In this document: one piece after another, positions 1,549 to 47,700 of the stretch
Layout: the number at the start of each line of letters is the position of its first letter
How positions within the stretch are numbered: the stretch's first letter is position 1
Assembly (NCBI RefSeq): GCF_000315625.1
Contig: NW_005434621.1
Coordinates: 419,539 to 483,538, forward strand
Direction: 5' to 3'
Source of the DNA: Guillardia theta CCMP2712
Taxonomy: Eukaryota; Protista; Cryptophyta
Length of the DNA stretch: 64,000 bases
Program-made: the position numbers and the translations under genes
Notes under the pieces: generated by a model
What the model was told of the DNA's origin: nothing
The model's input: only the letters and a program-made list of their open reading frames with translations
Databases searched by the model: none

Positions 1549-2813
1549 TCACATGGGAGGAGGAGGAGGCGGTTGCTGCAAACAGGAATCAGCCGTCCAG
1601 GAGCAAGAGGAGGAGCATGAGTATGGGAGCAATGGGGATGAGTGGGAGGGGGGAGAAAGCGAGAAGGAGGATCAGTACCGGAGGAGCCGCTCCGGGAGGA
1701 AGTGGCGGGCCAGTCTCCCTCTTACCCCTGAAGTGGATCTGATTGGGATGTGAGTCAGGGCAGGCAGCAAGGACTCAGCTGGGGTCTACCTGCATGGTGA
1801 AGGTCTTGGTGTCAAAGTCCCAGTTGGTGAAGAATTTGCTGGGGGAGTTGTCAATCTCTTGGTTGGGAACCTGAGCGAGTCATGAGCAGGGCTGGAAGGA
1901 AGAGGACTCATAACCTTGAACGCGATCGTCTCGTACGGGTCCGCCGCCACCAGGATGTACTGGTAGTTCTTGTCCGCCGGCTCCACTCGCTGCTCGTAGG
2001 CAGACATGAAGCGGTGTCGCGGCTGCGGGAGTCTGAGCGATTCAGAGGAGGAGAGGAGGAGTCTGAACCTGCAGTCCCTGCTCGATCTCGGGGTAGTCAA
2101 TGAGGAACAGGAGGGATCGCTGTCCTGTTTCCGGATCCCGCTGCTTCGTCACTCTGCAGCCTTCACGTCAGCTCCTTCCACACCAACACACAACAACCAA
2201 CCTGTAGCCGGGACGACCGATCTTCGCTGACTTCCTTTGCACCTTCTGCATGAAAGGGATCATGACTGGCGACACGACATCTGCTCAAACCATCTCCTTG
2301 GGTGCGGCTGGCTGAAACCCGAGCCCCTGCTCATAGGCGTCCTTGGCCAACCTTCTGGCGATGTTCTGCTGATGCCTCTTGCCTTGAGTGTGCGCCAGGT
2401 AGTTTCCTTGCAGGACGTCACCACACCAACACCGCACGGCCAGCAAGCACACCTTCATTCGTGTGGATCGTCAGGCAGAGCTTGCACTCGTAAGTTCCAA
2501 GGTGGTTCTTCATGAAGTAGGGATCCTATGGATTGGACACCTTCAGTTGTCGTTCAGTTAGCCTGCTCCCACTCACCCTGTTCAGGTCGATCGTCTCGAG
2601 CGCAAGCTTACGCAGGCGCTCTCGTCGCATCTGATTCTCCTGCGGACAAACTTGTCAGACCCTTCCCGCTGTCGCAAAGGACTTCAGACCTGACTCTCCG
2701 ATGACTGACGGCCGGACCCCGTCTTACCTCCCCTCCCCATCATATCCGCATCTGTCACAACCACCTCAGTCTTCACATTATAGTTTGCAACGGAGGTCAC
2801 CTGAGAAACCCAT
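1549..2813 (-). CDS. SF3A2: Splicing factor 3A subunit 2 (SAP62/Prp11), multi-exon
   Basis: Exons read MGRGGKTGSG, RRERLRKLALETIDLN, DPYFMKNHLGTYECKLCLTIHTNEG, NYLAHTQGKRHQ and PRHRFMSAYEQRVEPADKNYQYILVAADPYETIAFK. Pro-rich end PPPPPM* at 1549. The start is inferred from manual splicing. Confidence 0.93.
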
Positions 2814-3751
2814 CTTGGTCTGTCAATGGCCTATACGTAGCGTTAGGATGATTAAAGCAGAGCAGGAAAAGTTGAATCAAAAGTGATATCTCTCTATCGA
2901 TTGGTTCATACCCTGAAGATCTTTTCCCTCGAGATTTCAATGCACAATTCCTACATTTCCTTTTTCTCCTCGCTTGCTTATGCCTTGTTTCTTCTCTCCC
3001 CTTCCCTCAATTCTCCCTCCTCCCCATGTAACCCTCAATTCTTCTTGATCCAGAACGCTTCCCTCCATTTCTCTTCATAGCCTCCCCTTACTTCTGCCAT
3101 TTTTGTCTTTCCTCTCCTCTCCCCTCCCCTACTTCCTCCCCTCCCTCTCTCTTCCTCTCCCTCCTTCTCCCCTCTCCCTCCCTCCCTCTCCCTCCCTCTC
3201 CCTCCCTCTCCCCTCCCTCCCTCTCCCCTTCCTCTTCATGGATTGCTGTTCTTCTCTCCCCTCCTCCTTCCCGCATGCTCCTCTCATCGCCGCTGCGCGG
3301 TCCCTCGAGCGAAACGGAAATAACCGATAGTGTATGAGGGCGATGATCCTTATCACCAATGGGCCGGACTCCGATGATCGGACCGGGCCGCCCGGCGGCC
3401 CGGCCGAGTGATGACGATAGTAGTACCGCCGCTGGTCAGCCTGGCCCCAGTGGTACTGGTAGGCTGGGACTCCGAGGCTCAGTGACATTCAGTGTCCCCG
3501 GGGGGGGGGGGGGGCGGTGACCAGTGATTTAAGCCTCCGCGAATAGAAACTTCTCTTTTATTGACTGAAAAAGAAAGGCAAACCGGAGCAAACAAGGGAG
3601 GACGAGAATAAAGCCTACGGAACCCGCCTCAATAAAATACTACTCCCGAAACGAAGGACTTCCGACACAGGCTCGGACTTCACTGCTGAGCTTCACTGGG
3701 GATGATTAAAAGGGATGAGCGGGGACGAGGGCACAAATCGCACGTGCCGTC

Positions 3752-43517: not shown

Positions 43518-43803
43518 CGAGGAGCACGGAACGATGGGCAGGGCAGACGGTCGGGAGGAGGGAGGAAGAGGGATAGGAGGAGAGACTAGAGGACTAGATG
43601 GAAGAAGAGAGAGGAAGAGAGATAGGAAGGAGACTTGAAGACTAGATGGAAAAAGTATTGGAATTGAGTGATCCTCCCTCCCTCCCTGACTCTCTTTCCC
43701 TCTTCCCTCTCCATCCACCCTACAAGTGAGGAAGAAACCTGTTTGTTTGTATTTTCCCTCTCGTATCCGGTTTATCTTCTCACTTTTAGTCATCAGGAGT
43801 TCT

Positions 43804-44729
43804 ATGAAGAGACCGCATGACCCCTCCGTGAACATCGAACAGGAGCTTCAGGACTTGTCAGAGCTTCAGCAGCAGCATGCAGATGAGGAAGAGGTCCCAG
43901 CAGAGTTGAAGCAGCGGGTCAGAGTGCTGAAGAACAGGCTTTCTGCGAAGAAGTCGAGGGAGCAAGCAAGAGAGTATGTCAAGAACCTCGAGGCCAAACT
44001 CGCAGTCGTCTCAACTGAGTCACAGATCCTCGCACATCGCCTCGCTACGCTCGAGGCAGAGAACGCCCAGCTAAGAGCCTCTCGAACGTTTCATGACTGC
44101 CCGAGCATGGAAGCAGGGAGGTTCCACATGCCATTTCCGGCGAGCCTCAGCTTTGAAGTTGGAGGAGAGAAGAAGAGAACGATCAACGAGCCTGCAGTGC
44201 TCTCACAAACATCCCTGCAGTTGGATGCCCTTCTTCTCCTCCTCTCCACGGCATGGGCTTCTCTCCTTCACGGCTCGTCTCCATCGCAGAGGCCGCTGGT
44301 GCTCATGGCTGCCTGGGCCTTGTCCTGCATCCGCTGCTGGGCGAGCATCCCTGCCATGACTGCTCCTCCTTCGGGCTCAAGGCAGTCCCTCTTGAAGCTG
44401 GTTGCTCAGGCTTGGCGTTGCCTCCCTGGCAGGCGCAGCACCAAAGGCACGCGATGGCGAGGGATGCAGCGGAGGCGGCAGCTACTATTTCGGCTGAGGA
44501 TGCTGTTGAGCAAGATATGACAGCTGCGGACGTAGACGAAATCTTGCAGTGCCAATTGAGAGTCAAACAAGAAGAGGAAGACAGAGGAAGACGGAGGGGG
44601 CATGAAGAAGTTGGGGTGGAGGATAGAGAAGGAGAGCAAACATGTGCGAGTGATGGAGGAGCGTTCAGTCTCGGTCATTCTGACTCCTGCATAGAGGCAT
44701 CTGAGTTCCTGGAGCGCTTCCTCGAGTGA
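43804..44729 (+). CDS. bZIP transcription factor, XBP1/HAC1/bZIP60-like; unspliced ORF ends at 44520 (238 aa), predicted spliced ORF ends at 44729 (300 aa)
   Basis: Basic region RVLKNRLSAKKSREQAREYV plus leucine zipper. The EPAVL motif is followed by a hydrophobic segment, and an overlapping open frame runs to 44729. Confidence 0.9.
44161..44242 (+). other. IRE1-type unconventional intron structure with a 23-nt intron at 44195-44217
   Basis: Hairpin GAGC-CUGCAGU-GCUC (44188-44202), hairpin CAUCC-CUGCAGUU-GGAUG (44210-44227), basal stem GAGAAGAAG (44167-44175) / CUUCUUCUC (44230-44238). Confidence 0.85.
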
Positions 44730-44784
44730 CCTTTGCTCCTCTTATTGTACAAAAGAATAAAGAATGGCATGATGGTCCCGCCCC

Positions 44785-47700
44785 TTACTTGCCTTCGCCC
44801 CGTCCCTTGTGTCTTCCTATCCACCGCTGGAAGGCAGGGTTTTGATAGAACAACTGAAACCACCCGCCGCGGTTCTCATCCTGTCCCACCTGAAGCAAAT
44901 CAATCCGAGGGCTTGAAGAGGAGGCCATCAAGAGGAGGCCATCAAGAGGAGGACATCAAGAGGAGGACATCAAGAGGAGGGAGGTCAGCAGAAGGTCTTG
45001 CCTGTCGTTCCTCCTCATCTCGAAGGTCAAGGATCGGCTGCCACCAGGGGTCCACGCGCTCGACAAACTCAGCCTACGGGGCATCTTAGCACCTCCGCGG
45101 ACTAAGACGCTTCCTCCACCAGTGCGTCACTCCCACATGCTGCAGCGTCATGAAACTCGCGGGCAAGCGCGTTCGTCTTGACAACAGAGTCGCTGTAGTT
45201 CCTCACTTGAAGCCCCTCCATGCTCGACGCGCGTGACAGGGCCACGTACGCCTGCCCTTCAGCAAAGCAGCCTGCGAGATCGACACAGACCTGAGGAGAG
45301 GTGAGAAGGAGAGACAGGTAGGGAGGAGGCACTTGGTCTAGAGTTTGACCCTGACTCTTGTGGATCGTGATAGCCCAGGCAAGCTTGAGGGGAATCTAGG
45401 AGGAAGTCAAAGCCAAGCAGCTGAGAGGGTCGGCACCTGAAATCTGCAGCATCGGCCGGTGAGGAAGACGTCGACTTCGAAGGCGACCGGCAGGCACGTG
45501 TGGCGGCAACCGTTGAGAAACTTGACAACCGGGCAATTGACTTCCCTCCACTTGGTCTGGAGCGCCTGAGAGAGACTAAGCGGGACAGAGGAAGAGGGCG
45601 ACTGAACCTGCAGCTGCATGTTGATGGTGGCGACCTCGTCCAAGTAGACCTCTTGCTCCTCCGCACTTATCCTCGAGGTTTGAGAAGCTTCTCAGGTTAA
45701 CGTCAGAGCTCTCGCCCTCGGGGGGGGCATCAGACGCTACCGAGCTGCTGCTTCACTTCCTCCAATCGTCTTCTTATCTCATTCGACGCATCAACGGCGC
45801 TCACAAAGTCGACAACAACCCCACGACTTCCGTTGACAAGTCGCTTGCTTAGAACGTTCTTGGTCAGCATGACCTGCGCGCCTTTCTTGAGGTGGAGGGT
45901 CTTGGGAACCAGACAGGAAGAGAAGAACTGATTCTGCCACAGCTTCCTCATCGCAGCGCTGCTGCTCATTCCCCCGCACCTCAACGGCTCGACCTTGCCG
46001 GCATCAGCCCACAACAACCTCAGCGGCGAATTACCGAGTCGTCGGCATCATACTTGAAGCTCTGATCAGGCAGCATGTCAAGCCTGCAGACGTTCTCACG
46101 GTCAACGTTTCGGTTGGTGGAGTAGAGGATCGTCGCTTCGATCCCATCCTGCTAGGCCTGTCAACGATGCCCATCTGAGCACGTGAGAGTACCTGACAAT
46201 TGAGGGGTCTCGAGCAGCTCTCGATGAAGCAGCGAGTGCAGTCGTCGATGGTCCCTCGTCTCAGCTTGCCGAGGACGTCAACCATCCGCTGATCCTTCTG
46301 CCTGCGACACCTAGAGCGTGAGAGGACTCGCTTCCATCGCCAAATTACCGAAACACATGCTGCAGCTCCACGGCAGCAAAGTTAGCTTCTCGCCAGCAGG
46401 CTGACTGAAACACAAGAGCCTCGCAATCTTCCACCACCACCGGAATGTTCAGGTCAACATTCTCTGAGCTGCTATGGCATGAACAGCTCTCAGATCCATC
46501 CCTCTCTCTTACCTTCGCAGCACGGGCGGGCACTTGTTACGGAGCTTAGCGCCGTTCCTGGTGAAGCTGCAGAGCTGGTAGAAGTCACCTGCTAGTCTCT
46601 CAGCTCCTGTCGCAGTGAGTCTCACTCGCCTGAGAAGATCAGCTGGAGGCCACCGAAGACTCTCTGGGTGTCTCCTCGAATTCTGCGAACCACCTGGTCG
46701 AGCCAGTCGAGAAAAGCAGGCTCGATCATGCTGACCTTCAACGCGGTCAGTCTCACAGACAAGACGAGGGGGCAGGACCTCATCGATGATGAGGACTTGC
46801 GCTCTTCTCCACTGCTTTTTGTTCTTCCAGCACTTCTCCAAGTCATATACGTTGGTAGGGATACCACAGCCAGCAAAGGAATGAAGCGTTTGGCCTTCAC
46901 AGAGAATCGACGCAACTCCTGTGGCTGCTGTAGGCACTACGGCATTCCTGCCATAAAGTCTCCGCAGCACCTTGATAAGTCTCCGCAACAAAAAAGTCTT
47001 TCCTGTGCCTCCCATCCCCGTGAAGAAGACATTTCGACCCTGTCGACACAAGTCGAGCACGAGCTTCTGCTGAGGGTCGAGGTCGCTCACGTCCACGTCG
47101 TCTGTGGTTGGCGACACCAGAATGACTTCCGCTCTCTTTTCATCTCGCGAGTATTGAGCCAGGTAGTGCCCCCCCTCCCTCTCCTTCCAGCGTTGGCACC
47201 TCGAGGCAGGAATCTCACACACGCAGCACTGAGAACCAGTCAGGTGGGGTAGCAGATGAAACAAGGACTTACATAACAGTTGTCACAAAACTGAGCACTA
47301 CCGAACTGATGGATCGCACAATGTTCTCTTGCATGAGGAAGGCTGACGCCAGCGAAGTCTCCTTTCATTCCAGTCACGATCAAGTCGTCTTCGATAATCT
47401 CGCCCTCTCTCGTTGTCATCCCCCACTCGCCCAGTTTGTCAGAGTGGGGACTGGAATCAAGAATCACACATTCATCGTCGTCATCGGATGTCCAACTTCC
47501 CCTGCCAATTTCCTCCATCCTCGCTTCCTGTTGCTCCACCCTGCCCAATTTCCTTTTTCCAAGTTCTCTCTCCAAAGCTTCAGCTCCACTTTTTCCCTCG
47601 CCGTCGCGATTGGAGGAAGATCCTGGTTCCTCTTTATGCTGACCACCACCCCTATCTGAGCCGTGAGCAGCTTCGTCTAGAATGCAAGATGCTCCCGTGA

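Follow-up and report, generated by a model that had tools for sequence, protein, structure and literature searches.

A bZIP gene of Guillardia theta is a real new member of the class of bZIP genes whose mRNAs are spliced by IRE1. We consider it likely that the region 3' of its predicted intron, within the 64,000-nt stretch of DNA analyzed here (the window), makes up the switchable C-terminal portion of a cryptophyte UPR bZIP mRNA of the XBP1/HAC1/bZIP60 class, with tail functions that are predicted. The region is in use as dual-coding sequence, and the constraint on it is partitioned: the frame of the unspliced mRNA (U) is constrained in the overlap, where the frame of the spliced mRNA (S) merely stays free of stops, and S is constrained after the U stop. 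IRE1-type excision is real in the cryptophyte bZIP family, and for the window's own gene it is predicted from the sequence.

Gene layout and transcript

The features of the gene, all on the plus strand and numbered from the first base of the window, are as follows (grounds in parentheses; slashes mark cut or junction sites throughout).

43538-43803, +: 5' untranslated region (UTR) of the bZIP gene, with two upstream ORFs inside (RNA contig starts at 43538-43559; ORF scan)
43804-44194, +: coding part common to both isoforms (Pfam bZIP_1 match; low omega)
44165-44241, +: RNA switch structure (fold; 9-sequence alignment)
44195-44217, +: predicted IRE1-type 23-nt intron, with a CUG/CAG cut at both loops (read from the sequence; spacing in relatives)
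44218-44520, +: overlap, U frame (translation; omega of 0.28)
44220-44520, +: overlap, S frame, a poorly conserved linker without stops (translation; omega; cross-lineage stop avoidance)
44521-44729, +: S-only coding part (codon-position rates; omega; invariance against contig L014)
44756-44774, +: AATAAA (44756-44761) and apparent mRNA 3' end (the high-depth contig of RNA run X6 ends at 44774)

The shared coding part consists of an acidic N-terminal stretch of 34 aa, a bZIP domain (43900-44079), and a linker that runs to ...INEP and takes in one further base, the first of the junction codon. The domain matches Pfam PF00170 (bZIP_1) over residues 33 to 92 with an E value of 1e-8 and 35.6 bits (cutoff, 27.6). 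From the ATG at 43804, the U frame encodes 238 aa, including a tail of 100 aa, and stops at 44518-44520; the S frame has a tail of 169 aa and ends with the TGA at 44727-44729. The public annotation of the gene gives the 238-aa unspliced product only.

RNA contigs from four runs in four studies span 43538/43559 to 44774/44888 with no joint within the bZIP gene. Because the contigs are colinear with the genome, we conclude that the gene has no conventional intron; that the contigs represent RNA follows from the spliced introns of the neighboring gene that are present in them. With the mRNA 3' end at ~44774, the whole S frame is covered by mRNA. The four RNA assemblies contained the unspliced form only, with no 23-nt-skipped junction of the window's own gene; because minor variants are lost from contigs, the absence of that junction carries little weight against splicing.

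The host genome contains IRE1-type kinase/KEN sequence and ligases of two types. In the assembly surveyed (87.1 Mb in 669 contigs, eukaryotic), a KEN domain (PF06479, 89 bits) on C559 adjoins a kinase C-lobe whose last residues are HPFFW, and C31 carries another KEN locus. An RtcB ligase domain scored 263 bits and a Trl1-type tRNA_lig_CPD domain scored 49 bits.

RNA switch and predicted intron

Two hairpins with CNG/CNG(N) in loops of 7 to 8 nt lie within a flanking stem. Hairpin 1 (44188-44202) has the loop CUGCAGU at 44192-44198, and hairpin 2 (44210-44227) has the 8-nt loop CUGCAGUU at 44215-44222. The flanking stem, a longer purine/pyrimidine stem in which 44165-44175 pairs with 44230-44241, encloses both. 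In an alignment of nine sequences, pairing was maintained at 94% for hairpin 1 and 100% for hairpin 2, where one AU-to-GC replacement is compensatory, and at 78% for the flanking stem, where two pairs are doubly changed. Rfam family RF04247 matched in the right place (44169-44236), with a score of 21.8 bits that is under the gathering score of 41 and is not taken as proof.

IRE1 cuts after the third loop base in HAC1, XBP1, and bZIP60 (PMC3216516, PMC11077094). This rule gives a 23-nt intron at 44195-44217 and makes 44218 the first base 3' of it. The junction codon (G44194 + C44218 + A44219) is still Ala, and removal of the inter-loop segment, which has codon phase 0 in each relative examined, replaces the C-terminus. 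The loops are spaced by exactly 23 nt, in the same codon phase, in nine sequences (the window's own counted) and by 20 nt in the clades of L013 and L021; twin loops 23 or 20 nt apart were present in 10 of 10 relatives examined and in the second gene copy of the host genome. The Leu run of the U tail is encoded by the CUU/CUC 3' strand of the flanking stem, and its conservation may act partly at the RNA level.

That second copy, at C35:625633-626016 (L024, about 1500-2500), is an IRE1-type bZIP paralog with the same layout. Its loops, CUG/CGG and CUG/CUG, are 23 nt apart, its U frame has a hydrophobic tail, and its S tail of ~190 aa ends in DDLLDLL...DGLDLF. L011 and P0022/P0025-29 look like orthologs of this paralog.

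Spliced transcripts in relatives

A word search combined with a profile search found 51 relatives, and the named ones are all cryptophytes (Hemiselmis andersenii, H. virescens, Rhodomonas sp. CCMP768, Chroomonas sp. CCMP1168, and Geminigera cryophila). Eight unspliced-form transcript contigs, the metagenome contig L014 (96% identical), and the genomic scaffold L021 were read at the nucleotide level. The closest species-level relative of the window gene is L005, with 76% amino acid identity. Spliced forms were judged solely from natural sequences in public assemblies.

Spliced-form transcripts with exactly the predicted junction were found in public assemblies of three relatives, and one of these was checked at the nucleotide level against genomic DNA. 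In P0018, from Chroomonas sp. CCMP1168, residues 1 to 121 are 100% identical to the N-terminal part of L007 and 158 residues are 99% identical to the L007 S tail, with the two parts joined exactly at EPA/AGC. P0024 (spliced) and P0019 (unspliced) follow one another among the transcripts of a single assembly and share the same N-terminus; P0024 continues in S from EPA/VGC, and P0019 continues in U. P0047 is a spliced form found on ten contigs, with cDNA contigs L019 and L020. Both of these cDNA contigs match genomic scaffold L021 at 100% except for a conventional 279-nt intron upstream and a 20-nt skip. The skip, at L021 positions 3524 to 3543, is bounded by CCG/CUG...CCG/CAG and has no GT-AG. 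Scaffold L021 is a marine metagenome scaffold that carries a Geminigera/Teleaulax-type ortholog; the conventional intron lies at 2773-3051, upstream of the coding sequence (CDS), the local fold has a z score of -3.4, and the hydrophobic segment is transmembrane (TM) grade.

Three proteins from older MMETSP peptide sets, P0016 (Hemiselmis virescens), P0020 (Rhodomonas sp. CCMP768), and P0055 (Geminigera cryophila), start in U, keep the hydrophobic segment, and continue later in S. We think it most likely that the older peptide caller corrected the frame in these three; it is not probable that they reflect a real second frame-changing event.

Constraint on the two open frames

A preliminary description of this DNA had reported that about 300 nt are open in both frames, and U and S are indeed both stop-free across 44218-44520, which is 303 nt. 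It had also named stops in the second frame of close relatives as the observation that would count against dual coding; S proved to be open in 10 relatives and one paralog. The complete S tails of relatives comprise 168, 136, 160, 178, and 85 aa, and three more are open to the contig end, with at least 146 aa. Of the remaining two frames of 44220-44726, one has 4 stops and the other, which is the U frame, has 9. In dinucleotide shuffles of 44220-44726, S was open over its 169 codons in 0.4% of trials, and the S-only part was open in 4.5%. When synonymous codons were reshuffled with the U protein held fixed, S stayed open across the overlap in 7 to 26% of trials, which is unremarkable for the window sequence alone; the product over five lineages for stop avoidance by S in the overlap was ~3e-4.

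Substitution rates at codon positions 1/2/3 between the window and L005 followed the U frame in the bZIP part (0.14/0.09/0.45; P = 8e-13) and in the overlap (0.18/0.12/0.34; P = 4e-4). Past the U stop they followed the S frame (0.04/0.17/0.47; P = 2e-6). Omega values were calculated by the Nei-Gojobori method for three close pairs.

Window versus L005: upstream, 0.07; overlap U, 0.28; overlap S, 1.8 (apparent); S-only, 0.27
L006 versus L007: upstream, 0.18; overlap U, 0.32; overlap S, 1.0; S-only, below 1 (pN of 0.36, pS of 0.77)
L010 versus L012: upstream, 0.43; overlap U, 0.69; overlap S, 0.95; S-only, 0.54

Estimation of dN/dS in both frames had been proposed in the preliminary description as a check on dual coding. 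In the overlap it bore out constraint on U but gave no amino acid constraint on S, which is constrained only 3' of the U stop. Compared with L014, the last 142 nt of S (47 codons) contained 0 changes versus 15 in the 171 nt downstream (P = 9e-5), and the middle of the S tail was fast changing.

Unspliced tail

Within the overlap, U encodes hydrophobic segments 1 and 2, an LLKL motif, and an arginine-rich end. The two hydrophobic segments and the basic end that had been noted earlier are present (DALLLLLSTAWASLL at 44224-44268, PLVLMAAWALSCIRCW at 44293-44340, and the basic end at 44443-44517), but the segments are marginal as membrane spans. They score 1.5 on the Kyte-Doolittle scale, with a Hessa sum of about +4 kcal/mol. 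The best 19-residue windows in the window's clade gave Kyte-Doolittle values of 0.5 to 1.6 and Hessa values of +4 to +11 kcal/mol; those of the Geminigera/Teleaulax-type clade gave 2.1 to 2.6 and -3 to +2 kcal/mol. The second segment did not hold up as a general feature: as an insert it occurs in just three sequences, those of the window, L005, and L014, which are Guillardia-like, and most members of the window's clade have a single segment of about 14 aa. The same hydrophobicity scoring found no hydrophobic segment in the spliced forms.

Three elements of the U tail are kept across the family. SLQLDALLLL lies directly 3' of the intron; the other two are LL(K/R)L(R) and, close to the end, a motif rich in arginine. 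The net charge of the tail is +15 in the window and ranges from +6 to +17 in the family. Between 60 and 95 residues come after the hydrophobic element, so the element can exit the ribosome while the basic tail is still in translation. This geometry resembles that of XBP1u and also that of plant orthologs that stall ~50 residues past the hydrophobic region (PMC11077094). Judging from these features, the U-tail element probably acts in membrane association and mRNA targeting as a peripheral element; in Guillardia, it could alternatively form a two-helix hairpin with the basic end in the cytosol.

Spliced tail

As the preliminary description had stated, the spliced tail is longer and acidic (169 versus 100 aa; net charge of -17 versus +15), and the C-terminal peptide quoted for it, IEASEFLERFLE, is present. 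In the window's clade, where five tails are complete, S always gives a longer tail than U; the S tail is the shorter one only in the distant 20-nt homolog L013 (85 versus ~116 aa). The S-only part of the window's tail consists of an acidic, fast-evolving middle (44521-44587) and a conserved C-terminal module (44588-44726) ending in SEFLERFLE. The S tails of different clades show little similarity apart from their very beginning, which the hairpin and the U frame dictate, and their end. A psi-KxE SUMO consensus had also been claimed; VKQE does occur at 44562-44573, but it is VKQG in L014 and is absent from all other relatives, and its reading as a SUMO site is thus probably due to chance.

The final 30 aa have a net charge of -5 to -9 and contain 7 to 9 bulky hydrophobic residues in all six complete S tails, with ends such as SEFLERFLE, DFLEEVLGAL, DDAEWLL, and DEDLVQWFG. 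Two further spliced or predicted tails end alike, in EEFMPFA (P0047) and DGLDLF (the paralog). A composition that is acidic and rich in bulky hydrophobic residues is typical of acidic activation domains. An AF2 model of the S tail placed a C-terminal helix at tail residues 158 to 168, with low confidence (pLDDT of 64, pTM of 0.26). The 9aaTAD pattern was absent from the window's S tail and scattered elsewhere and was uninformative, and searches with the S tail alone matched no family.

The preliminary description had inferred that a plant-like intron is combined with an animal/fungal-like gain of an activator tail. The intron length, the position of the hydrophobic segment, and the longer, acidic-ended product agree with that picture. 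The gain of an activator is putative, because the shared N-terminal 34 aa are acidic too (net charge of -8, with conserved residues) and could be the activator, as in bZIP60.

Model and alternatives

We propose that the unspliced mRNA encodes a bZIP domain, hydrophobic segment(s) right after the intron, and an arginine-rich tail and that this U tail would hold the nascent chain and the mRNA at the ER membrane, away from the nucleus. An XBP1u-style peripheral hydrophobic region, coupled with slow translation of the basic tail, would be a likelier means of doing so than a true membrane span. When the ER is stressed, IRE1 would cleave both loops behind the G of CUG/CAG, and a tRNA ligase would rejoin the exons minus the 23 nt, shifting the frame. 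In the spliced mRNA, the same 303 nt would then encode an unconstrained linker, and 209 nt more would lead into the acidic, hydrophobic C-terminal module, whose end would serve as a transcriptional activation domain.

The logic of bZIP60 would assign these roles differently: the U tail would be a true anchor (possibly a two-segment hairpin), the shared acidic N-terminus would be the activator, and splicing would mainly release the factor. The hydrophobic segment does lie directly after the 23-nt intron, as it does in bZIP60 (PMC3216516), the N-terminal 34 aa have the charge (net -8) and the conserved residues that such an activator might show, and the Geminigera/Teleaulax-type clade has TM-grade segments; two segments followed by a basic C-terminal end would also suit the positive-inside rule. 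However, segments in the window's clade score as marginal, and most members have a single one of ~14 aa. Purifying selection acts on the end of the S tail, which is acidic and hydrophobic wherever the tail is complete; mere release would not need this. The S tail also exceeds the U tail in length wherever tails of the window's clade are complete (five cases), which is not so for bZIP60s; the distant homolog L013 alone has a shorter one. We regard this bZIP60-type reading as rather unlikely.

Two other accounts do without regulated splicing. Were this an ordinary bZIP with a hydrophobic tail, its second frame would be open by chance or composition and would go untranslated; the 7 to 26% of synonymous reshuffles that leave S open in the overlap of this single sequence, the absence of the spliced form from four RNA assemblies, and the lack of amino acid constraint on S in the overlap are what would be expected. 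Chance does not explain why S stays open in every relative as well as in the paralog, why codon periodicity in S sets in after the U stop (P = 2e-6) with the last 47 codons invariant, why the twin loops are conserved, or why three relatives have transcripts with the exact spliced junction, and we consider it very improbable. The S product might instead arise independently of IRE1, whether through a ribosomal frameshift or through translation starting internally at the ATG at 44253, which opens a 158-aa S-frame ORF (44253-44729) that gene callers do call on unspliced transcripts. Against this, the spliced cDNAs of relatives miss exactly the 20 or 23 nt between the loops, no slippery site was noticed on reading the sequence by eye, the ATG at 44253 falls outside the conserved pattern in distant relatives, and a stand-alone tail would have no DNA-binding domain. 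Production of the S tail by such a route is extremely unlikely.

Comparison with known systems

IRE1-dependent splicing of bZIP mRNAs is known from animals, fungi, land plants, and green algae (PMC11077094, PMC12530127), and the literature that we searched contained no paper linking cryptophytes, the UPR, and bZIP proteins. The design found here is that of XBP1 and bZIP60, and strict membership in either subtype fails on at least one feature.

The likeness to plant bZIP60 (Arabidopsis bZIP60 and rice OsbZIP50) lies in the twin CxGxxG loops within a flanking stem, with a second loop of 8 nt (PMC3216516, PMC11077094), and in the intron lengths: the bZIP60 intron is 23 nt long in dicots and 20 nt long in monocots (PMC3216516), and both lengths are found in the cryptophyte family. 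In both groups, moreover, a hydrophobic segment starts right after the intron and is lost by the frameshift (PMC3216516, PMC11077094). Although that position is the one expected of a bZIP60 TM domain, the hydrophobicity of the segment is marginal in the window's clade and TM grade in another. bZIP60s is shorter than bZIP60u (258 versus 295 aa) and has its activation domain at the N-terminus, whereas the cryptophyte spliced tail is the longer one (169 versus 100 aa) and has a conserved acidic end, and the cryptophyte N-terminal region, though acidic, is only ~34 aa long. A profile search with the cryptophyte family returned no protein named bZIP60.

XBP1 shares with the cryptophyte gene the overlapping frames 3' of the intron, an unspliced form with a moderately hydrophobic region and an ORF end about 50 or more residues further on, and a longer spliced form whose C-terminus acquires an acidic region (PMC3216516, PMC11077094). 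Without stress, the unspliced form prevails in both (here in assembled culture RNA; PMC12530127 for nematodes). The XBP1 subtype is defined by a 26-nt intron, a C-terminal gain of activation, and SUMO sites; the window's gene has 23 nt, its acidic end is present, and psi-KxE occurs in the window only, the SUMO-type motif of the cryptophyte tail being not conserved. The hydrophobic region of XBP1u lies further from the intron. Sequence searches detected no similarity between the cryptophyte tails and those of XBP1.

Yeast HAC1 and green-algal CrbZIP1 likewise undergo an IRE1-dependent change of the bZIP C-terminus, and in Hac1 it is splicing that supplies the activation domain (PMC3216516, PMC11077094). 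HAC1 differs in having a long, translation-blocking intron and in leaving overlapping frames unused. CrbZIP1 has incomplete CxGxxG motifs (PMC11077094), whereas the cryptophyte genes keep both perfectly.

The whole switch extends across cryptophyte genera, namely, Chroomonas, Hemiselmis, Rhodomonas, and Geminigera as well as Guillardia, and its spliced forms were already in public transcriptomes, where they had been overlooked. The segment-wise selection is a clean natural example of two overlapping frames sharing constraint. Because constraint is partitioned in this way, the cryptophyte family offers a tractable comparison for deciding which features of XBP1 and bZIP60 are ancestral. It is conceivable, if doubtful, that cryptophytes, a lineage outside animals, fungi, and green plants, keep two paralogous IRE1-spliced bZIPs that join a plant-like hydrophobic element at the splice site with an animal/fungal-like gain of an acidic activator and that the dual-frame arrangement and the activator gain are ancestral. 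If so, the N-terminal activator of bZIP60 would be derived.

Flanking features

The ~260-nt 5' UTR of the bZIP mRNA contains upstream ORFs at 43598-43645 (15 codons) and 43646-43729 (27 codons), and most relatives have one to three upstream ATGs; these ORFs may form an extra layer of translational control. A purine-rich/pyrimidine-rich inverted repeat in the 5' UTR (43549-43720) was considered as a candidate structure and set aside: its folding energy of -67.7 kcal/mol corresponds to a z score of -0.38 against shuffles, which is not significant. The same repeat draws many weak matches to Rfam miRNA models.

Downstream, a convergent gene on the minus strand (44785-45332) encodes the C-terminus of a PIF1-like helicase and is spliced in four of four RNA runs, with introns at 45073-45118 (GT-AG) and ~44890-45001 (GC-AG after a 1-nt shift). 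Antisense coding by this neighbor was weighed as a source of the S-only conservation and rejected; by exon-wise frame arithmetic from the RNA joints, its CDS stops at 44785, short of the S ORF. That end lies 56 nt from the S stop, and assemblers fuse the two convergent transcripts.
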